This document shows, in pieces, positions 44,213-53,452 of a DNA stretch of 64,000 nt. Each line of letters begins with the position of its first letter. The first letter of the stretch is position 1. The notes under the pieces are model-generated. The model saw only the letters and a program-made list of their open reading frames with translations, searched no databases and was not told the DNA's origin. Location of the stretch: NCBI RefSeq assembly GCF_000006765.1, contig NC_002516.2. One strand, given 5' to 3'. Source of the stretch: Pseudomonas aeruginosa PAO1 (GTDB taxonomy: Bacteria; Pseudomonadota; Gammaproteobacteria; Pseudomonadales; Pseudomonadaceae). Position numbers and translations under genes: made by a program.

Positions 44213-45445
44213 TCACCAACTGGCGGGCAGCATCCCCAGTGCCGAGGCGATCGCGTAGACCCCGCTGGAGGCGAACACCAGGACGATCAGCCCCTGTATC
44301 AGCGGATGGGCATACCAGCCGCAGCTGAATGCCGGCAGTTGGTCGCCGTGGCGCCGCGCCGCGTTGAGCAGGAGGATGGGGATGATGCCCATCAGTACGC
44401 CGCCGAAGGTACCGGCGAAGTACAGCGCGTTCACGAAGCCGCCGAGCCCCGCATAGGCCAGCAGGAACGGCGGGACCGAGACCGCGGCGAGCACCGCCAG
44501 GCGTTTGCGCCGGTTGGTTTCGCTGCCCAGGCGGAAGTGGTCGAAGATATTGGTGAACAGGCACCCGCCGAGTCCCCAGTAGGAGGTCAGCATCGCCAGC
44601 AAGGCGAAGGTGTTCGCCACGTAGTAGGCCCATTGGCCGAGGGAGCGTCCCCAGCTCAAGGTCGCCACCTCGCTGAGGTTGTCGGGGCCGACCAGGGCGA
44701 TGACCGAGGCAGGAATGGCCGCCACCAGCAGGAAGGTCAGCAGCATGCCGACCACGATCAGGCGCGGCACGCGCCCGGGGGTTGCCAGGTTGCCGCGCAC
44801 CAGCTCCGGAACCAGGAACTGCGCGCCGAACACGAAGACCGCCAGGTTGAACACTGGAACCACGTATTGCCACTGGCTCTGCCAAAGGTGGGCGAGACGG
44901 GCGTCGTCGTGCATCAGGGTAGCGCCGATGAGGATGCAGACGATGGCCACCATGCCGGCGCTGATCAGCTTCTCGCCCACGCCGAGCGCCTTCAGGCCCA
45001 GGTAGAGCACCAGCGCCGAGGGGACGAAGAAGATCAGGCTGCCGACCTGGCGCGTGAGGCCGTACTGGCCGAAGAACTCGAGCATGATGTTGCCGCTGCC
45101 GGTCATGTAGGCGACCAGGGCCCCGTAGCTGTTGGCCGCCACCGCGATGAAGATCAGCCAGCCGCCGAGCGGGCCCAGGTAACGCCGGGAGAGGCCGCTG
45201 AGCTGGTTGTTGCCGCGGGTTCTCAGGCAGGCTTCGGTCACGTAGAGCATGGTGACGATGCAGAAGAGGCAGGTCAGGGCCAGGCATACCAGCAACGGCA
45301 CGTAGCCGACCTTGCGGGCGGCGTAGGCCATGCTCAGCACGCCGGCGCCGATGTTGGTGCCGATGATGATCGCGATCGTCTCGAGCGAGCCCAGGGGATG
45401 GGCCTTGAGGCCCGATGCGTTGTCGTTCGCTTCTCGCATACCCAT
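44213..45445 (-). CDS. Aromatic amino acid permease family (HAAAP/Trp-Tyr-like) transporter
   Basis: 'IIIGTNIGAGVLSM', 'LLAMLTSYWGLG' and ~11 TM helices. Confidence 0.88.
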   Translation of the reverse strand: MGMREANDNASGLKAHPLGSLETIAIIIGTNIGAGVLSMAYAARKVGYVPLLVCLALTCLFCIVTMLYVTEACLRTRGNNQLSGLSRRYLGPLGGWLIFIAVAANSYGALVAYMTGSGNIMLEFFGQYGLTRQVGSLIFFVPSALVLYLGLKALGVGEKLISAGMVAIVCILIGATLMHDDARLAHLWQSQWQYVVPVFNLAVFVFGAQFLVPELVRGNLATPGRVPRLIVVGMLLTFLLVAAIPASVIALVGPDNLSEVATLSWGRSLGQWAYYVANTFALLAMLTSYWGLGGCLFTNIFDHFRLGSETNRRKRLAVLAAVSVPPFLLAYAGLGGFVNALYFAGTFGGVLMGIIPILLLNAARRHGDQLPAFSCGWYAHPLIQGLIVLVFASSGVYAIASALGMLPASW

Positions 45446-45489
45446 TTCTTGTTTCCTCTGTCAGGGCGGTGGAGTTCGGTTCTTCGGGG

Positions 45490-45837
45490 TCAGTCGAAGA
45501 TCAGGTAGGTCTTGCGCACGGTCTGGCGGATGTCCCAGGTGCCCTGGGTGGCAGCGGCGAAATAGAGCGCGTCGCCGGCGCGAAACTCCACGGCCTGGCC
45601 TTCGTCGGGGGTGAAGCGACCTTCACCGCTGACGATGTAGCTGTACTCGGCCTGCTCGACCTGTCGGCGGAAGCGCCCCGGGGTGCATTCCCAGATGCCG
45701 GTCACGCCGTTGCCGTCGGCGAGCGGGCGGTGGGCCGCGGTACGGGTCAGGGCTACCGGTTCGCCCAGGGGCTGGCCGACGGGCGTGGGCGAGGTGAAAG
45801 GACTTTCGTCGTCGAGACGGATGAGCGAAGGGTTCAT
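45490..45837 (-). CDS. Small cupin (DUF861/EutQ-like)
   Basis: 'TGIWECTPG', 'EYSYIVSG' and 'AGDALYF...GTWDIRQTVRKTY'. Confidence 0.88.
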   Translation of the reverse strand: MNPSLIRLDDESPFTSPTPVGQPLGEPVALTRTAAHRPLADGNGVTGIWECTPGRFRRQVEQAEYSYIVSGEGRFTPDEGQAVEFRAGDALYFAAATQGTWDIRQTVRKTYLIFD

Positions 45838-45849
45838 GCCATGGGCTCC

Positions 45850-47250
45850 TCAGGATTTGTCTTCAAGGCCGGCGGGGGCGAAGCGCGCGAGAAAGCGGTC
45901 GGTGGCCGAGGGCGCGGTACCGGCGAGTTCCGCGCGTTCCTTGCGCAGGACGGCGTTGCGCACCAGGGAGCCACCCAGGTAGCGCAGCGGCTCGGGGGGG
46001 AAGCTCCGGCAGCGGCGTTCTACCAGCGGACAACGGCTCCACGGGTCGTCGCGGCCGAGGGCGAGGCTGGCGAGGATCCGCCCGCCCAGGCGGCTCGGTC
46101 CCACGCCGTTGCCGCTCCAGCCGATGCCGTAGTGGATGTTCTCGTGCAGGCGGCCGAAGACCGGCAGGCTGTCGTAGGTACGGTCGATGGGGCCGGACCA
46201 GCCGTCGACCAGCGGGATGTCGCCTAGCGAGGGATAGGTGCGGCGGAAGTCGGCCTCGGTCAGGGCCAGGCTCTCCCGGTCGACGTCGAATACCCGGCCG
46301 ATGCGCGAGCCGTAGCTGAGGGCGCCGGTGCCCTTGCCGAAGGCGATGCGCCCGTCGCGGGTGGTGCGGTAGTAGTCCACCATCAGTTGGGAATCGGTGA
46401 TGGCTTCCCCGCCGGTCCAGCCGATTCGCTCCAGCCGTTGCGGTATCGCCTCGGTAACCGCGATGGAACTGTTCACCGGCACGATCAGCCTGGAGAGCCT
46501 GGGCAGGGCGGCCGACCAGGCGTTGGTCGCGAGAACCACCGCCTTGGCCTGAACCCGGGCCCCGGCGCTCAGCAGCTGTGCCGGCTGGCCGGGAACGATC
46601 TGGCTGACGCCACAACGCTCGTGGATTTCCACGCCGAGGGCCAGCGCCACGCGGCGCATGCCTTGCACCAGCAAGGCTGGTTGCACGGTGGCATTGCTGC
46701 GCTCGAAGACCCCGGCGAGATGCACCGGCGAACCGGTCCGGCGTGCCACTTCGCTGGCGTCGAGGCGTTCGAAGGGACTGACGCCGAGCCGTTCGCAGGC
46801 GGCGAGGGTATCGTTCCAGGCGTCGAGGTGGTGCGCCGTGGTGGCGGTCCACAGCCAGCCCTTCTGCTGGAAGTGCGCATCGATGTCATGCCGCGCGCAG
46901 AACTCCCCGAGTTCCTGGATCGCCCGCTCCGCGCTTTCGCCAAGGAAGCGCGCCTGCGCCTCGCTGCAGAAGCCCAGCAAGGTGCCGATCTTCGGCCACC
47001 AGGACATCACGAAACCACCGTTCCTGCCGGAAGCGCCGCCGCCGCAGACGTCCTGCTCCAGCAGCAGGACCCGTGCGTCCGGCTCCAGTTGCTTGAGGGT
47101 GATGGCGGTCCAGAGCCCGACGAAACCGCCGCCGACTATCGCCACGTCCGCCGAGTGGGTGCCGACGAGGGGGGCGCTGGTGGCGTCGGCCAGGTCGGTC
47201 GAGCGCATCCAGTGGCTGGGGGTCAGGGGAGGGGTGAGCGTGAGTTTCAT
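45850..47250 (-). CDS. FAD-dependent oxidoreductase (DAO/PuuB-like amine or amino-acid oxidase), 466 aa
   Basis: 'DVAIVGGGFVGLWTA', 'GGASGRNGG' and 'GWSGNGVG'. Start MKLTLT. Confidence 0.9.
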   Translation of the reverse strand: MKLTLTPPLTPSHWMRSTDLADATSAPLVGTHSADVAIVGGGFVGLWTAITLKQLEPDARVLLLEQDVCGGGASGRNGGFVMSWWPKIGTLLGFCSEAQARFLGESAERAIQELGEFCARHDIDAHFQQKGWLWTATTAHHLDAWNDTLAACERLGVSPFERLDASEVARRTGSPVHLAGVFERSNATVQPALLVQGMRRVALALGVEIHERCGVSQIVPGQPAQLLSAGARVQAKAVVLATNAWSAALPRLSRLIVPVNSSIAVTEAIPQRLERIGWTGGEAITDSQLMVDYYRTTRDGRIAFGKGTGALSYGSRIGRVFDVDRESLALTEADFRRTYPSLGDIPLVDGWSGPIDRTYDSLPVFGRLHENIHYGIGWSGNGVGPSRLGGRILASLALGRDDPWSRCPLVERRCRSFPPEPLRYLGGSLVRNAVLRKERAELAGTAPSATDRFLARFAPAGLEDKS

Positions 47251-47443: not shown

Positions 47444-48142
47444 TCAGGCGTCGCGCAGTTCGAAGGCGGGAAACAGCTCTTCCAGTTCTCGCCATAGCTG
47501 CGCAGCGCCCTGCGGCGCGGGCTTCGCGAGAAGCTGCGGATCGAGCTGGCGGGCCGGGCGCGCCAGTTGTACGGCGAAGCGCTCCACGCCCATCTCGCGC
47601 AGGCGCGTCGCCAGGCGCCAGAGGCGTTCGCTATCGAACAAGCGCCAGTGCACCGTGGTCCGGCATTCGTAGGCCACGCCGCTGACCAGCAGGCATTCCA
47701 GGCTGCGCCAGTTGGCCGCGCCGCTGCCGTCCACGCCGGTAATGGCGGCGACGTCCTCGGCCGGCGCCTTGACGTCGAAGCCCACCCAGTCGCTCTGCGC
47801 CAGCACCCGGGCGAAGGCGCGGGGGTTGATGCCGGCGCTGTGCAGGCCGACGCGGAAGCCCAGTTCGCGGACCGTGCGCATGGCGTCGCCGAGGGCCGCC
47901 TGCAGGGTCGCCTCGCCGCCGCTGAAGACCACCGCCTGCAACAGGCCTTGGCGTCGGCGGAGGAAGTCGAGCAGGCGTGGCCAGGGGATTTCCTCCGCGC
48001 CGCGCGGCGCGATCAGTTCCGGGTTGTGGCAGTAGCGGCAGCGCCAGGCGCAGCCCTGGCAGAACAGCACGCAGGCGAGCAGGCCGGGGTAGTCGAGGGT
48101 GGTCAGGGGCACCAGGCCCCCGACCCTGAGCGTGGCGCTCAT
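47444..48142 (-). CDS. nrdG: Anaerobic ribonucleotide reductase activating radical-SAM enzyme
   Basis: 'CQGCAWRCRYCHNP' CxxxCxxC motif and 'VVFSGGEAT'. Confidence 0.95.
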   Translation of the reverse strand: MSATLRVGGLVPLTTLDYPGLLACVLFCQGCAWRCRYCHNPELIAPRGAEEIPWPRLLDFLRRRQGLLQAVVFSGGEATLQAALGDAMRTVRELGFRVGLHSAGINPRAFARVLAQSDWVGFDVKAPAEDVAAITGVDGSGAANWRSLECLLVSGVAYECRTTVHWRLFDSERLWRLATRLREMGVERFAVQLARPARQLDPQLLAKPAPQGAAQLWRELEELFPAFELRDA

Positions 48143-48285
48143 CGCGTCTCGCGGAAATGGCGGCGTTCGCGATGCTCGGACTGCTTGCCGGCATTGAACG
48201 CTGCCACGGGACGGTGGTAGCCCATCACGCGGGTCCAGACTTCGCAGCGCTGGCGCTGGTCTTCGGGCAACTGGTTGGGGTTCAT
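48139..48285 (-). CDS. 48-aa stand-alone glycyl-radical peptide of class III RNR (NrdD C-terminal fragment); absent from the ORF track
   Basis: Hand translation: MNPNQLPEDQRQRCEVWTRVMGYHRPVAAFNAGKQSEHRERRHFRETR*. AAGGAG SD upstream; TGA overlaps the nrdG ATG (ATGA). Confidence 0.9.
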   Translation of the reverse strand: MNPNQLPEDQRQRCEVWTRVMGYHRPVAAFNAGKQSEHRERRHFRETR

Positions 48286-48328
48286 CGGTGGTACTCCTTG
48301 CTGGTGGATGAAAGGAACGACAGGCGAC

Positions 48329-50356
48329 TCAACCGCCGCAGCCGCCGCAACAGCTCTTGGGCGTGGAGCGTTGCAGCAGCTCCTCGTCGCACTTCGGGCA
48401 GAACTCGTGCTCGCCGGCCAGGTAGCCGTGCCGCGGGCAGATCGAGAAGGTGGGGGTGACGGTCAGGTACGGCAGGCGGAAGCGACCGAGGGCGGTGCGC
48501 ACCAGGGTCTTGCAGGCTTCGGCGGAGGAAATCCGCTCGGCCATGTAGAGATGCAGCACGGTGCCGCCGGTGTACTTGCATTGCAGGGCGTCCTGCAGCT
48601 CCAGCGCCTCGAACGGGTCGTCGGTGAAGCCCACCGGCAGTTGCGAGGAGTTGGTGTAGTAGGGCGCCTCCGGCGTGCCGGCCTGGAGGATGCGCGGATA
48701 GCGCTTGCGGTCCTCGCGGGCGAAGCGATAGGTGGTGCCCTCGGCGGGCGTGGCTTCCAGGTTGTAGAGGTGCCCGCTGTCCTCCTGGAAACCCACCAGC
48801 CGCGCGCGCACGTGATCGAGCAGGGCCAGGGCCATCTCGCGCCCGGCTTCGCTGTGCAGTCCCTCGCGGTCGTCGCTGAAGTTGCGCACCATCTCGTGCA
48901 GGCCGTTCACGCCGATGGTGGAGAAATGGTTGCGCAGGGTACCCAGGTAGCGTCGGGTGTAGGGATAGAGGCCGGCATCCATGTGCTGCTGGATCACCTT
49001 GCGCTTCAGCTCCAGGCTGGCGAAGGCGAGTTCGAGCAGGTGGTCGAGCTGGCGGTAGAGGCCGGCGGCGTCGCCACGGTGGCGATAGCCCAGGCGCGCG
49101 CAGTTGATCGTCACCACGCCCAGCGAGCCGGTCTGCTCCGCCGAGCCGAACAGGCCGTTGCCACGCTTGAGCAGTTCGCGCACGTCCAGTTGCAGGCGGC
49201 AGCACATCGAGCGCACCTGGTTGGGCTGCATGTCCGAGTTGAGGAAGTTCTGGAAGTAGGGCAGGCCGTAGCGCGCGGTCATCTCGAACAGGCGCGTGGC
49301 GTTGTCGCTGTCCCAGGGGAAGTCGTGGGTGATGTTGTAGGTCGGGATCGGGAAGGTGAATACCCGGCCGTGGGCATCGCCGGCCTGCATCACCTCGATG
49401 TAGGCGCGGTTGATCAGGTCCATCTCGGCCTGCAGCTCGCCGTAGGCGAAGGGCATCTCCTCGCCGCCGATGCGCGGCACCTGGTCGCGCAGGTCGTCCG
49501 GGCAGACCCAGTCGAAGGTCAGGTTGGTGAAGGGTGTCTGGGTGCCCCAGCGCGACGGCACGTTGAGGTTGTAGATGAACTCCTGGAGGGCCTGGCGCAC
49601 GCTGGCGTAGTCGAGGCGGTCCTTGCGCACGTAGGGCGCCAGGTAGGTATCGAAGGAACTGAAGGCCTGGGCCCCGGCCCACTCGTTCTGCAGGGTGCCG
49701 AGGAAGTTGACCATCTGCCCCAGGGCGCTGCCCAGGTGCTTCGGCGGACCGGCCTCGACCCGCCCCGGCACGCCGTTCAGGCCTTCGTTCAGCAAGGTGC
49801 GCAGCGACCAGCCGGCGCAATAGCCGGCGAGCATGTCGAGGTCGTGGATATGCAGGTCGGCGTCGCGGTGGGCGGCGGCGATGTCGGCATCGTAGACCTC
49901 ATCCAGCCAGTAGTTCGCGGTGACCTTGCCGGATACGTTGAGGATCAGCCCGCCGAGGGAATAGCCCTGGTTGGCGTTGGCGCGCACCCGCCAATCCTCG
50001 CGGGACAGGTATTCGTTCATCGACGCGGCGACGTCCACCAGGGTCTTGCGCTCGCGGCGCAGCCGGCCGTGGCGTTCGCGGTAGACCACGTAGGCGCGCG
50101 CCGTAGGGTAGTGGCCGGCCTCCATCAGCACCCGTTCGACCAGGTCCTGGACCCGTTCGATATCCAGGCAGGCGCGTTCCGGCAGGCGTTCCACCACGCG
50201 TTCGGCGAGCGCCTGCGCCTGCTGCGGGTCGAACTCGCCGGTGGCTTGGCCGGCGGCGGCGATGGCGCGTTCGATCTTGCCGGGATCGAAAGGGACTTCA
50301 CGTCCGTTGCGCTTGAGCAGGGTGGCCGGCCAGGTAGCCTTCCGGGGCTGGGTCAT
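48329..50356 (-). CDS. nrdD: Class III (anaerobic) ribonucleoside-triphosphate reductase catalytic subunit, 675 aa, lacking the glycyl-radical tail
   Basis: ATP-cone 'KRNGREVPFDPGKI', 'GYCAG', finger loop 'SMCCRL', 'NLEATPAE', 'YYTNS' and Zn ribbon 'CPRH...CPKC'. GGAG SD before ATG 50356. Confidence 0.95.
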   Translation of the reverse strand: MTQPRKATWPATLLKRNGREVPFDPGKIERAIAAAGQATGEFDPQQAQALAERVVERLPERACLDIERVQDLVERVLMEAGHYPTARAYVVYRERHGRLRRERKTLVDVAASMNEYLSREDWRVRANANQGYSLGGLILNVSGKVTANYWLDEVYDADIAAAHRDADLHIHDLDMLAGYCAGWSLRTLLNEGLNGVPGRVEAGPPKHLGSALGQMVNFLGTLQNEWAGAQAFSSFDTYLAPYVRKDRLDYASVRQALQEFIYNLNVPSRWGTQTPFTNLTFDWVCPDDLRDQVPRIGGEEMPFAYGELQAEMDLINRAYIEVMQAGDAHGRVFTFPIPTYNITHDFPWDSDNATRLFEMTARYGLPYFQNFLNSDMQPNQVRSMCCRLQLDVRELLKRGNGLFGSAEQTGSLGVVTINCARLGYRHRGDAAGLYRQLDHLLELAFASLELKRKVIQQHMDAGLYPYTRRYLGTLRNHFSTIGVNGLHEMVRNFSDDREGLHSEAGREMALALLDHVRARLVGFQEDSGHLYNLEATPAEGTTYRFAREDRKRYPRILQAGTPEAPYYTNSSQLPVGFTDDPFEALELQDALQCKYTGGTVLHLYMAERISSAEACKTLVRTALGRFRLPYLTVTPTFSICPRHGYLAGEHEFCPKCDEELLQRSTPKSCCGGCGG

Positions 50357-50440: not shown

Positions 50441-50454
50441 TTGATCTGCGTCAG
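50441..50454. promoter_or_regulatory. Anr/Dnr (FNR-type) box upstream of nrdD
   Basis: Minus strand CTGAC-GCAG-ATCAA versus TTGAY-N4-ATCAA; a CAGAAT -10-like hexamer sits at class II spacing (50419-50414). Confidence 0.7.
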
Positions 50455-50513: not shown

Positions 50514-51323
50514 TCAGGCCTGGGCGAGGCGGGCGAAGACGACGTAGTTGTCCAACTGCTGCCAGACCGTGGCGGCCTCGGCGAAACCCGCCTGGCGCAG
50601 GGCGGCGAGATGGAAATCGAGCGAGCAGTCTTCGTCTTCGCTGGCGCGCCTGAGCGGGCGCCGCGCGAAATGGGCGTCGCGCTGCGCCTTCAGCGGGGCC
50701 AGCCGGGGGATCTGCGCGGCGCGTTGCCACCAGTCTTCCCAACTGTCCGCGCCGCTGGCCACGGACGCCTGGAGGACCCGCTCGCGGTGCTTCCGGGACA
50801 ATTCCGCGAGTCCCGGCCAGCGTCGGTCGTAGCGCATGTGGTCGGCGTTCAGCAGCACGCCGCCGGGGGCGAGCAGCTCGCCGGCCTGGGCGTAGAACCC
50901 GGCGAGTTCGGCGGGCGACAGCCAGTGCAACGCGGTGGAAGAGAGCAGCGCCGCGGGCCGTTCGCCGGCGAGGGACTCGCGCGCTTCGGCGACCCGTTCG
51001 GTCCAGCCTGGATCGGTGAGGTCGCACTCCACCACGCGGACCCGCTCGGCGAAACCGGCCAGCGCCGTACGCGCGATCTCCAGCAGCATGACGTCGGCGT
51101 CCAGCGCCACCACCCGCGCCGCCGGGAAGCGTTCGAGCAGGCGCCGGCCGAGGGAGCCCGGGCCGCAGGCGGCGTCGATGGCGGTGAAGCGCCCGTCGCG
51201 GCCGAAGAGGTCTTCGAGCAACTGGAACATCGCCTCGTAGCGCTCCTCGCGCTGGCGGATGTAGCCCTCCTGCTGGCGGTCCCAGCGTTCGAGGAGCGCC
51301 ATGATCTGCTCGGTTGCGGTCAT
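50514..51323 (-). CDS. Class I SAM-dependent methyltransferase, 269 aa
   Basis: Motif I 'IDAACGPGS', 'VVALDAD', 'SSTALHWL' and 'PGGVLLNAD'. AGGAGG SD before MTATEQ. Confidence 0.88.
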   Translation of the reverse strand: MTATEQIMALLERWDRQQEGYIRQREERYEAMFQLLEDLFGRDGRFTAIDAACGPGSLGRRLLERFPAARVVALDADVMLLEIARTALAGFAERVRVVECDLTDPGWTERVAEARESLAGERPAALLSSTALHWLSPAELAGFYAQAGELLAPGGVLLNADHMRYDRRWPGLAELSRKHRERVLQASVASGADSWEDWWQRAAQIPRLAPLKAQRDAHFARRPLRRASEDEDCSLDFHLAALRQAGFAEAATVWQQLDNYVVFARLAQA

Positions 51324-51490: not shown

Positions 51491-53452
51491 ATGACCCCCC
51501 ATTCCTCCCCGCACCGTCTTCCTCCGCTGCGGCTGGCCCGCGCCGTGCCGTTCCTCTACCTGCTTCCCTGCCTGGCGCTGGCCGCGCCGGTCGACCTGGA
51601 GCCGACCGTGGTCAGCGCCACCACTACCGAGCGCAAGCTGCGCGACGCCCCGGCCAGCGTTTCGCTGATCGCCGCCGAGGACCTGCGGCGGCGCCCGGTG
51701 CGCGACCTGCAGGAAGCCCTGCGCGGTTCGGAAAGCCTGCAGTTCAACGGCGTCGGCATGTCCCGGCGGGGCATCAGCGTTCGCGGCATGTCCAGCGAGC
51801 ACACCCTGGTGCTGGTGGACGGCCAGCGGATCTCCACCTCGTCCGGGGCCATCGCCCATTCCGACTTCGACCTCGGCTGGGTGCCGGTGGAGAGCATCGA
51901 GCGTATCGAGGTGGTACGCGGACCGATGTCCTCGCTCTACGGTTCGGAAGCCCTCGGCGGGGTGGTGAACGTGATCACCCGGCGCGCCACCGATACCTGG
52001 ACGGGCAGCGGTCTGCTCGATGGCGGCGTGCGCGAGGACGGCCTCGGCGGGCAGAGCCACCAGCTCGGCGCCTATCTCGCCGGGCCGCTGGTGCCCGGCA
52101 AGCTGGGCCTCGCCCTGAACGGCGAGAGCCGCCGCCAGCAGGAAACCCCGGACGCCGATGAGCGCCGACTCTCCGAGCTGGAAGGCGGCAACGCCGACAG
52201 CGGTGGGCTGAACCTCAGCTGGACCCCGGACGACGCCCAGCGCATCGACCTCGGCCACCAGCGCGGGCGCGAACGACGCTGGCGCAACAGCGAGACCGGA
52301 GGGCCGCGCTCGCGCTACTACGAGTCGCGCGACGTGATCGAACGCGAGCGCTGGTCGCTCGCCCACAATGGCCAGTGGGACTGGGGCAGCAGCCAGCTGC
52401 GCACCTACCGCAACCGCCTGGAGCGGCACAACGCGCGTTCCGACGGACAACCGCCGAGCAACCCGCAGCGCCTTACCGACAGCGTGGTCGACGGCCACCT
52501 CAGCGTGCCGGCCTTCGAGCGACATCTCTTCACCCTCGGCGGCGAATGGCGCAAGGAAGAACTGGAGGATCGCTCGGTGAATACCGCCGGCGACGCCAGC
52601 GCGCGACACAAGGCGCTGTTCCTGCAGGACGAGATCGCCTTCGGCCCGGACTGGTCGCTGACCCTCGGCAGCCGCTTCGACAAGCACGAGGCGTTCGGCT
52701 GGGAAAGCAGTCCGCGCCTGTACCTGCTGCACCACCTTTCCGATGTGCTGACCCTGCGCGCCGGCGTCGGCCGCGGCTACAAGGCGCCGAGCCTGAAGCA
52801 GCTATCGCCGGAGTATGCGGCGGTCGGTGGCGGCGGGCGCTTCACCATCTACGGCAATCCCGACCTGAAGCCGGAGACCAATACGTCCTACGAACTGGGC
52901 GCCGACTACCAGGGCGATGGCTGGTCGCTGAAGGGCACGGTGTTCGAGAACGATGTCCGCGACCTGATCCAGACCGTCTGCGTAGCGCGCTGCGGGGTGC
53001 GCGGCGGCGAGATACGCAACTACGAGAACGTCGACAGGGCACGGATCCGCGGCCTCGAGCTGGGCGGCGGCGTGGACCTGCCGGCGGACCTGCGCTGGGA
53101 ACTCAACTACACCTACCTCGACGCGCGCAACCGCACCGCCGGCCAGCGCCTCGGCGATCGCTCCCGGCACCTCGCCAACAGCCAATTGCGCTGGAGCCCC
53201 AATGTCCGCTTCAGCGCCCAGTTGCGCACCGAATACGTCGGCAGCCAGGTGGCCTACAGCAGCAACGTCGGCTACGCCTTGCCGGCCTACAGCCTGTGGC
53301 ACCTGGAGCTGAGCCAGAAACTCAGCGAGAACCTGACGCTGCGCGGCGGCATCGAGAACCTTGGCGACCAGCGCCTGGCCGACGACGACACGCACTTCAC
53401 CTATGCCGAACCTGGGCGGACCTTCCATCTCGGCCTGGTGGCGAGCTTCTGA
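51491..53452 (+). CDS. TonB-dependent receptor (CirA/BtuB-like, no signalling domain)
   Basis: TonB box 'VVSAT', 'RDAPASVS', 'IERIEVVRGPMSSLYGSEALGGVVNVIT' and C-terminal Phe. Confidence 0.95.
   Translation: MTPHSSPHRLPPLRLARAVPFLYLLPCLALAAPVDLEPTVVSATTTERKLRDAPASVSLIAAEDLRRRPVRDLQEALRGSESLQFNGVGMSRRGISVRGMSSEHTLVLVDGQRISTSSGAIAHSDFDLGWVPVESIERIEVVRGPMSSLYGSEALGGVVNVITRRATDTWTGSGLLDGGVREDGLGGQSHQLGAYLAGPLVPGKLGLALNGESRRQQETPDADERRLSELEGGNADSGGLNLSWTPDDAQRIDLGHQRGRERRWRNSETGGPRSRYYESRDVIERERWSLAHNGQWDWGSSQLRTYRNRLERHNARSDGQPPSNPQRLTDSVVDGHLSVPAFERHLFTLGGEWRKEELEDRSVNTAGDASARHKALFLQDEIAFGPDWSLTLGSRFDKHEAFGWESSPRLYLLHHLSDVLTLRAGVGRGYKAPSLKQLSPEYAAVGGGGRFTIYGNPDLKPETNTSYELGADYQGDGWSLKGTVFENDVRDLIQTVCVARCGVRGGEIRNYENVDRARIRGLELGGGVDLPADLRWELNYTYLDARNRTAGQRLGDRSRHLANSQLRWSPNVRFSAQLRTEYVGSQVAYSSNVGYALPAYSLWHLELSQKLSENLTLRGGIENLGDQRLADDDTHFTYAEPGRTFHLGLVASF

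Follow-up and report, generated by a model that had tools for sequence, protein, structure and literature searches.

A split class III ribonucleotide reductase in Pseudomonas aeruginosa PAO1 with its glycyl-radical segment encoded by a separate small gene

The nrdD-nrdG operon and its small third gene

The stretch of DNA analysed here (the window; 64,000 nucleotides (nt) of Pseudomonas aeruginosa PAO1, contig NC_002516.2) carries on its minus strand the operon of a class III, or anaerobic, ribonucleotide reductase (RNR), in which a small open reading frame (ORF) encoding 48 residues lies between the gene for the catalytic protein, nrdD, and that for its activase, nrdG. The nrdD core gene (48329..50356, minus strand) encodes 675 residues followed by a TGA stop; its coding part runs from the ATG at 50356 down to 48332, with the TGA at 48331-48329, and the protein as read from the sequence begins MTQPRK. 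It consists of an ATP-cone (PF03477, residues 14-97), a class III RNR barrel whose finger-loop cysteine motif, RSMCC, begins at residue 382, and a Zn ribbon, and it belongs to the family by PF13597 (E = 1e-170; 569 bits, cut-off 26), NF006126 (1124 bits, cut-off 548) and TIGR02487 (445 bits, cut-off 326). The Zn-ribbon ligands, assigned from sequence as C640-x2-H643 (or H650) and C653-x2-C656, are encoded at 48389..48439 (minus strand); aligned via a fused relative, C640, H643, C653 and C656 coincide with the Zn site of Thermotoga maritima NrdD (PDB 4COI), for which the pattern CxxxHx6CxxC has been given (PMC4493059).

The chain stops only 19 residues past this ribbon, as ...CPKCDEELLQRSTPKSCCGGCGG. 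The RVxGY glycyl-radical motif was not found anywhere on its 675 residues, and the profile matches end early, covering positions 2-531 of 562 in PF13597 and 4-658 of 684 in NF006126. What is missing from NrdD is found immediately downstream, beyond a 43-nt intergenic spacer (48286..48328, minus strand), in a gene (48139..48285, minus strand) that lies in frame +1 relative to nrdD and encodes MNPNQLPEDQRQRCEVWTRVMGYHRPVAAFNAGKQSEHRERRHFRETR. Its radical glycine would be Gly22 (codon 48222-48220), within RVMGY, and an AAGGAG Shine-Dalgarno (SD) sequence at 48299-48294 sits 8 nt ahead of its ATG (48285). The small protein matches PF13597 at positions 531-562 of 562 (E = 8.9e-9; 35 bits, above the gathering score, the cut-off being 26) and NF006126 at positions 649-682 of 684; no other Pfam family was matched at E <= 1, the Gly_radical domain of pyruvate formate-lyase (PFL) type, PF01228, included. 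In both families the coverage of NrdD and of the small protein is exactly complementary and, as far as sequence comparison can tell, this complementarity, taken with the conservation described below, is far beyond chance.

The TGA of the small gene (48141-48139) overlaps the ATG of nrdG (48142-48140) as ATGA. The product of nrdG (47444..48142, minus strand; 232 residues) is a radical-SAM activase (PF04055) with a strong match to TIGR02495, NrdG2 (E = 4.7e-72; 241 bits, cut-off 131). When the interval from nrdD to the small ORF was scanned for promoters and terminators, no site resembling either was found. The original prediction, made from the letters of this DNA, had claimed that NrdD stops just after its Zn ribbon without an RVxGY motif, that a small ORF with its own AAGGAG follows after 43 bp in a different frame and is ATGA-coupled to nrdG, and that this ORF encodes the C-terminal glycyl-radical segment of NrdD. 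All of this is borne out by the sequence and the profile matches.

Upstream of nrdD, the sequence CTGACGCAGATCAA at 50441..50454 (minus strand) is the sole exact match in the window to an Anr/Dnr box, and is the box variant reported from the nrdD promoter of PAO1 and not from that of clinical isolates (PMC5645315). The operon is followed on the same strand (44216-47250) by genes for a DAO-family FAD oxidoreductase, an EutQ-like cupin and a Trp/Tyr-type permease, and is preceded by a gene for an S-adenosylmethionine (SAM) methyltransferase (50517-51323, minus strand, as the operon) and, divergently, by one for a TonB-dependent receptor (51491-53449, plus strand). None of these neighbours has an obvious tie to RNR.

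Conservation of the split across genomes

At least 1000 contigs of P. aeruginosa carry the identical 48-residue peptide, and RefSeq also contains near-identical proteins from this species (e.g. WP_086340034.1, WP_134240644.1, WP_132782277.1), under the names 'anaerobic ribonucleoside-triphosphate reductase' or 'oxidoreductase' that RefSeq/PGAP gives to the product of the small ORF. The earlier suggestion that the gene falls below usual ORF cut-offs is thus true only in part, as RefSeq/PGAP and other pipelines do call it in P. aeruginosa. A search of 5.8 billion proteins yielded 3433 clusters of stand-alone homologues, 26-84 residues long, with hosts that include Pseudomonas, Stutzerimonas, Halomonas, Diaphorobacter and Acidihalobacter.

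In a scan of one genome per species, at least 598 loci contained the motif, and the geometry of the best 80 of these was scored as split or fused. The split was found in 78 of the 80: NrdD ends after the Zn ribbon and is followed by a separate, ATG-initiated ORF of 45-78 residues, preceded in nearly all 78 by an AAGGAG-like SD. The geometry of the junction is otherwise loose, with spacers from -26 to +234 nt (median 36) and relative frames of +1, 0 and +2 in 31, 25 and 22 of the split loci, respectively. The protein itself is not: across 81 loci, 28 of its 48 residues are invariant while being encoded by two to five synonymous codons, and variability at codon positions 1, 2 and 3 is 0.10, 0.10 and 0.31, from which it follows that the frame of the small ORF is under purifying selection. 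Hosts of the split include facultative aerobes and denitrifiers (Pseudomonas, Stutzerimonas, Halomonas, Thiobacillus), and also an Oxalobacter metagenome-assembled genome from the rumen (sheep omasum), a member of the Geopsychrobacteraceae, the purple sulfur bacteria Thiocapsa and Thiohalocapsa, Verrucomicrobiota, and phage-like contigs of low guanine-cytosine (GC) content.

Conserved extensions are present on both sides of the break. When the NrdD tail beyond the Zn ribbon (DEELLQRSTPKSCCGGCGG; 48332..48388, minus strand) is compared with the tails of the 78 split loci, a DE(A/E)LL motif after CPxC is conserved across the split clade and the Cys-rich end is confined to this lineage; on the small protein, an LPxxQRQRC extension is conserved ahead of EVWTRVMGY. 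The Cys-rich end comprises residues 669-675 (48332-48352, minus strand; CCGGCGG). Among the split loci about 10 of 79 have cysteine pairs in the tail (e.g. CKACKG, CNCLG, CCNCE, SCCK), as do about 10 of 75 split representatives; the feature is not conserved clade-wide. Some of the small proteins likewise terminate in Cys pairs. By analogy with the C-terminal Cys pairs of class I and II RNRs these could be a redox shuttle or a metal site, or they could be due to chance. We set aside the idea that the split serves to release the end of NrdD for a Cys tail acting as a redox shuttle, given how few loci and representatives carry a tail of the CCGGCGG type.

More distant NrdDs were collected with HMMER from 1.84 billion representatives clustered at 50% identity, and the best 150 relatives (P0121-P0270) were taken. 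About 55 of these carry the glycine motif, and about 75 end no more than 70 residues past the Zn ribbon without it. Most of the 150 are 800-1900 residues long with two to five matched stretches, and hence contain one or more inteins, which confirms, judging from these interruptions, that nrdD is heavily colonised by mobile elements.

Genomic context was fetched for seven of the distant truncated NrdDs. In L084 (GC 41%) a 60-residue glycine-motif protein is encoded 90 nt downstream of nrdD, and in L090 (GC 29%) one of 43 residues lies 14 nt downstream of an intein-bearing nrdD. Elsewhere the small gene has moved: in L081, a phage-like contig encoding DnaB, MazG and a Rad50-like protein, nrdD is followed by a homing-endonuclease gene, this by nrdG, and nrdG by a gene for a 61-residue glycine-motif protein, while in L083 a 50-residue protein is encoded 2.4 kb upstream of nrdD. 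This displacement from the 3' end of nrdD is strong evidence that the small gene is independently translated.

Directly after the truncated nrdD, both L081 (5116-6177, plus strand) and L087 (3310-4956, minus strand) encode a DUF7487 protein that matches a PHROG homing-endonuclease family. Insertion of a free-standing homing-endonuclease gene could be one route to fission, by analogy with mobE in nrdA of phage Aeh1. The small glycine-motif proteins of L083 (446-598) and L081 (6838-7023) match the PHROG family phrog_4132 ('unknown function') over approximately positions 115-155 of its 179-position profile, so that this phage family may contain glycyl-radical segments that have gone unrecognised. 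Because a tblastn search of GenBank phages with a phage-like small protein gave no match at E <= 1e-3, the gene content of metagenomic contigs is the sole basis for the link to phages.

A single-chain NrdD, P0139, is encoded on a 145-kb phage-like contig (L085:3001-6345, plus strand) and has inteins as well as a glutaredoxin-like domain after its glycine segment; P0136, P0153 and P0177 end in the same way. Enzymes of this type appear, from their domain order, to have a built-in reductant domain. They also led us to discard the idea that the split frees the NrdD C-terminus for fusion to a redoxin, since the NrdD-glutaredoxin fusions are single-chain, with the glycine segment preceding the glutaredoxin.

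A probable two-chain enzyme and its alternatives

The explanation that we favour, at a probability of roughly 0.85, is that P. aeruginosa has a two-chain class III RNR, of which the 48-residue protein is a separately translated, obligate radical-bearing subunit and not a back-up. The only glycyl-radical segment of the nrdD-nrdG operon is on the 48-residue protein, so the radical would have to be supplied in trans, as the original prediction had proposed; NrdD has no such segment of its own, and the peptide would thus be obligate. We infer from the absence of any other glycine segment in the operon that both polypeptides are needed for activity. The 675-residue core has the ATP-cone, the catalytic barrel with its finger-loop cysteines and the Zn ribbon. 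In the proposed mechanism the small protein, which corresponds by homology to the final ~35 residues of single-chain NrdDs and bears Gly22, would be translated from its own SD and ATG in translational coupling to nrdG. In the structures of T4 and T. maritima NrdD, the C-terminal glycine hairpin reaches the finger loop inside the barrel (PMC4493059). Extrapolating from these tethered C-termini, the peptide would dock non-covalently, its glycine hairpin entering the barrel beside the finger loop, and NrdG with SAM would abstract the C-alpha hydrogen of Gly22, from the peptide while it is free or once it is in the complex. The DE-A-L-L motif of NrdD and the LPxxQRQRC of the peptide presumably stand in for the covalent link.

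A sequence search of the PDB with the 48-residue peptide gave no match, and the break was therefore placed through a natural fusion, L079. Aligned with T. maritima NrdD (4COI), it locates the break after the Zn ribbon (…CPVCGKAKV) and ahead of the strand that leads into the glycine loop (DEYMRIVGY…). In an AlphaFold2 model, of modest confidence, of L073, another natural fusion (mean pLDDT, the predicted local distance difference test, of 76), a helix predicted at 649-659 follows the Zn ribbon directly, the junction (660-672) is confidently placed and the glycine is predicted to lie on a β-hairpin.

P. aeruginosa that lacks nrdD is impaired in anaerobic growth and in infection, and complementation with an nrdD-nrdG fragment shows the class III RNR to be active in vivo when the whole fragment is supplied (PMC5645315). 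It is important to note that this fragment contains the small ORF, and the published complementations therefore neither test nor contradict the need for it. Several points do weigh against a two-chain enzyme with an obligate small subunit. No mass spectrometry, ribosome profiling or electron paramagnetic resonance evidence for the peptide or its radical was found in the open-access literature; the survey of this genome covered the window, and a second, full-length nrdD could still exist elsewhere in it; the tip of the glycine hairpin in the L073 model (residues 681-685) has a pLDDT below 50; and at three of the seven distant loci (L087, L088, L089) there is no glycine-motif ORF within the few kb of context, although we consider these loci uninformative rather than contrary.

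The history of the split bears on how it should be interpreted. In a FastTree phylogeny of 143 NrdD barrels, with tail columns left out, the NrdD of the window belongs to a well-supported clade that comprises 84 split and 5 fused rows (89 in all). In this, the largest split clade, the split has persisted across no fewer than three phyla and reversions are very few. Changes between split and fused states number at least five on well-supported branches and 16 by parsimony, counts that are tentative in view of long-branch warnings. Basal fused relatives have a short link (e.g. CPSCKQAITVWSRVMGY) and lack the extension of the NrdD tail. Three fused forms nested among the split ones (L073, L079, P0262) have long linkers instead (e.g. 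CPQCDAEARARLGLPEGADVPEDDRHRCEVW), which resemble an NrdD tail joined to the N-terminus of the small protein, with both extensions kept. Their sequences suggest that they are re-fusions, and the presence of such apparent re-fusions inside a split clade in turn suggests that the split and fused states are nearly interchangeable. The split form of class III RNR is real, ancient and widespread.

It may be that fission was largely neutral: the covalent link between the Zn ribbon and the glycine loop would be dispensable, stops and restarts at this permissive surface junction would come and go with no effect on function, and the two pieces would form a tight, non-exchanging complex like that of NrdJa and NrdJb. 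This has close to an even chance of being correct, in our estimation, though slightly below it. The repeated changes of state, the high variability of spacers and frames, and the long-linker relatives all point in this direction; in phage-like contigs, the homing-endonuclease gene located at the break supplies a mechanism without adaptive content, and a split class II RNR is tolerated in the same organism (PMC4520616). Set against this are the persistence of the largest split clade across its phyla and the conserved extensions that flank the break, both of which are compatible with a benefit while not requiring one. Neutral fission is not exclusive of the two-chain enzyme with an obligate small subunit.

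A further proposal, which develops the replaceable subunit of the original prediction, suited in its view to a facultative biofilm organism, would likewise refine that explanation and not replace it, namely that the small protein is an exchangeable cofactor. NrdG would charge the free peptide, which would then dock; after cleavage by O2 the pieces would leave and a fresh peptide would restore activity, an adaptation to fluctuating O2. Since NrdD keeps no glycine segment, O2 scission can hit the 48-residue chain only, and the proposal is chemically reasonable; also in its favour are the translational coupling of the small gene to nrdG and the many facultative aerobes or denitrifiers among the hosts, and there is a precedent in GrcA/YfiD for PFL (PMC13450708). 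We nonetheless think it unlikely to be the purpose of the split, which is also found in Oxalobacter, the Geopsychrobacteraceae, purple sulfur bacteria and low-GC phage-like contigs; the nested long-linker fusions, in looking like re-fusions, suggest near-neutrality, and there is no sign of a higher dosage of the small gene, such as a second copy or a promoter of its own. The fuller version, in which the protein of 45-75 residues is a diffusible radical cofactor charged off-enzyme by NrdG and fissions at the same junction in unrelated lineages and phages, whose recurrence the tree suggests, reflect selection for repairability, is a somewhat longer shot again. If exchange did occur, the 'spare-part' principle would extend from formate lyases to ribonucleotide reductases, and the long-debated exit of the glycine loop from the barrel for activation would be uncoupled from the enzyme.

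Recoding, in which ribosomes would frameshift or hop over the 43-nt gap to give a single-chain NrdD, is very improbable. The frame of the small ORF is indeed open for ~59 codons upstream of its ATG, overlapping the 3' end of nrdD, as is expected at 68% GC; however, every small ORF has an ATG and nearly all an SD-like motif, the gene follows nrdG or lies upstream of nrdD in other lineages, and relative frames and spacer lengths vary so widely that a conserved frameshift, hop or read-through is excluded, with the result that this comparative geometry effectively refutes recoding. Least probable of all is an error of sequencing or assembly, or else a class III RNR that is decaying and non-functional in this strain. 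Nothing beyond the unusual gene structure recommends this reading, and it is already refuted by the identical peptide on many contigs, the split at 78 of 80 species loci, strong purifying selection and complementation of nrdD-loss phenotypes by the nrdD-nrdG fragment (PMC5645315); the original prediction had named a frameshift artefact or strain-specific lesion as grounds for its own dismissal, and the split is instead conserved.

Relation to known systems and significance

A first comparison is with single-chain NrdDs, such as those of E. coli, phage T4, T. maritima and Prevotella copri (PDB 1H79, 4COI, 8P23), which match the same family profiles (PF13597, TIGR02487, NF006126) and have in common with the P. 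aeruginosa system the ATP-cone, barrel, finger-loop cysteines, Zn ribbon, RVxGY motif and NrdG activase. Every class III RNR character that we looked for is present in P. aeruginosa save one, in that the glycine motif is off the NrdD chain: in single-chain enzymes the glycine loop is on the same chain, 5-10 residues past the Zn ribbon, whereas in P. aeruginosa it is on a separate 48-residue product, with clade-specific extensions on both sides of the break.

GrcA/YfiD and T4 Y06I are, like the 48-residue protein, small stand-alone proteins homologous to the C-terminal part of a large glycyl-radical enzyme, whose activase presumably charges them. The likeness is superficial, and the analogy that the original prediction had drawn to GrcA/YfiD as a spare part fails, since GrcA acts after O2 cleavage as a back-up to a PFL that has its own glycine domain, while NrdD has none and the peptide would be obligatory. 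The P. aeruginosa peptide is, moreover, of the NrdD type (PF13597) and not of the PFL type. A 2026 review records spare-part proteins for formate lyases alone and treats their existence elsewhere as undetermined (PMC13450708).

A closer parallel, and the closest that we found, is the split class II RNR NrdJa/NrdJb, also of P. aeruginosa, in which the catalytic chain is again interrupted close to its C-terminus, giving two neighbouring ORFs in a single operon, and which has a similar spread through gamma- and beta-Proteobacteria. As with NrdJa and NrdJb, nrdD and the small gene are two adjacent ORFs of one operon that jointly cover a single-chain homologue and are conserved across taxa. NrdJb differs from the 48-residue peptide in being 229 residues long and in serving thiol-disulfide exchange, not radical storage. 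Both O2-independent RNRs of P. aeruginosa are thus split near the C-terminus (for NrdJ, see PMC4520616). In papers on RNRs, NrdJ is described as the sole split RNR of cellular organisms.

Phages provide RNR genes in pieces, such as nrdA-a/nrdA-b of Aeh1, split by mobE, and nrdD genes with introns or inteins, where separately translated pieces give an active enzyme. L081 resembles Aeh1 in having a homing-endonuclease gene right after its split nrdD, whereas there is no mobile element at the P. aeruginosa break within the window. The phage splits are sporadic and occur at other positions, and cases described as phage 'split nrdD' are intron, intein or fragmentation events elsewhere in the gene (PMC3653736); the NrdD split described here occurs at one junction in hundreds of cellular species. 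There is finally a conceptual likeness to class I RNRs, in which the catalytic and radical-storing (NrdB) subunits are separate polypeptides. No homology is involved, and class I enzymes use a metallo-cofactor or tyrosyl radical with long-range transfer, while here the glycine is expected inside the barrel.

To our knowledge, textbook and review descriptions all place the radical glycine of class III RNRs on the catalytic chain. No account of such a split NrdD turned up in the open-access literature, RNR phylogeny papers included, though it may be mentioned elsewhere; as far as we could find, the split has been recorded by annotation pipelines and has apparently gone unrecognised in the literature. 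Here, and apparently for about half of the closest NrdD clusters, a separate micro-protein bears the radical glycine, and class III RNRs can therefore be hetero-oligomers.

This has practical consequences. NrdD and NrdG of P. aeruginosa, Halomonas or Thiobacillus, if supplied without the small ORF, should yield a non-activatable enzyme, and knock-outs, polar insertions and annotation-based models of "nrdDG" must reckon with a third gene. Surveys of RNRs that filter by length or require the glycine motif will misclassify or discard split NrdDs. The split form also offers a natural system for asking how an activase reaches a glycine buried in a barrel, and allows a test for glycyl-radical spare parts outside formate lyases. 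For P. aeruginosa itself, whose anaerobic and biofilm growth relies on class II and class III RNRs, the interface between the peptide and the NrdD core would be a contact specific to the split form of the enzyme.

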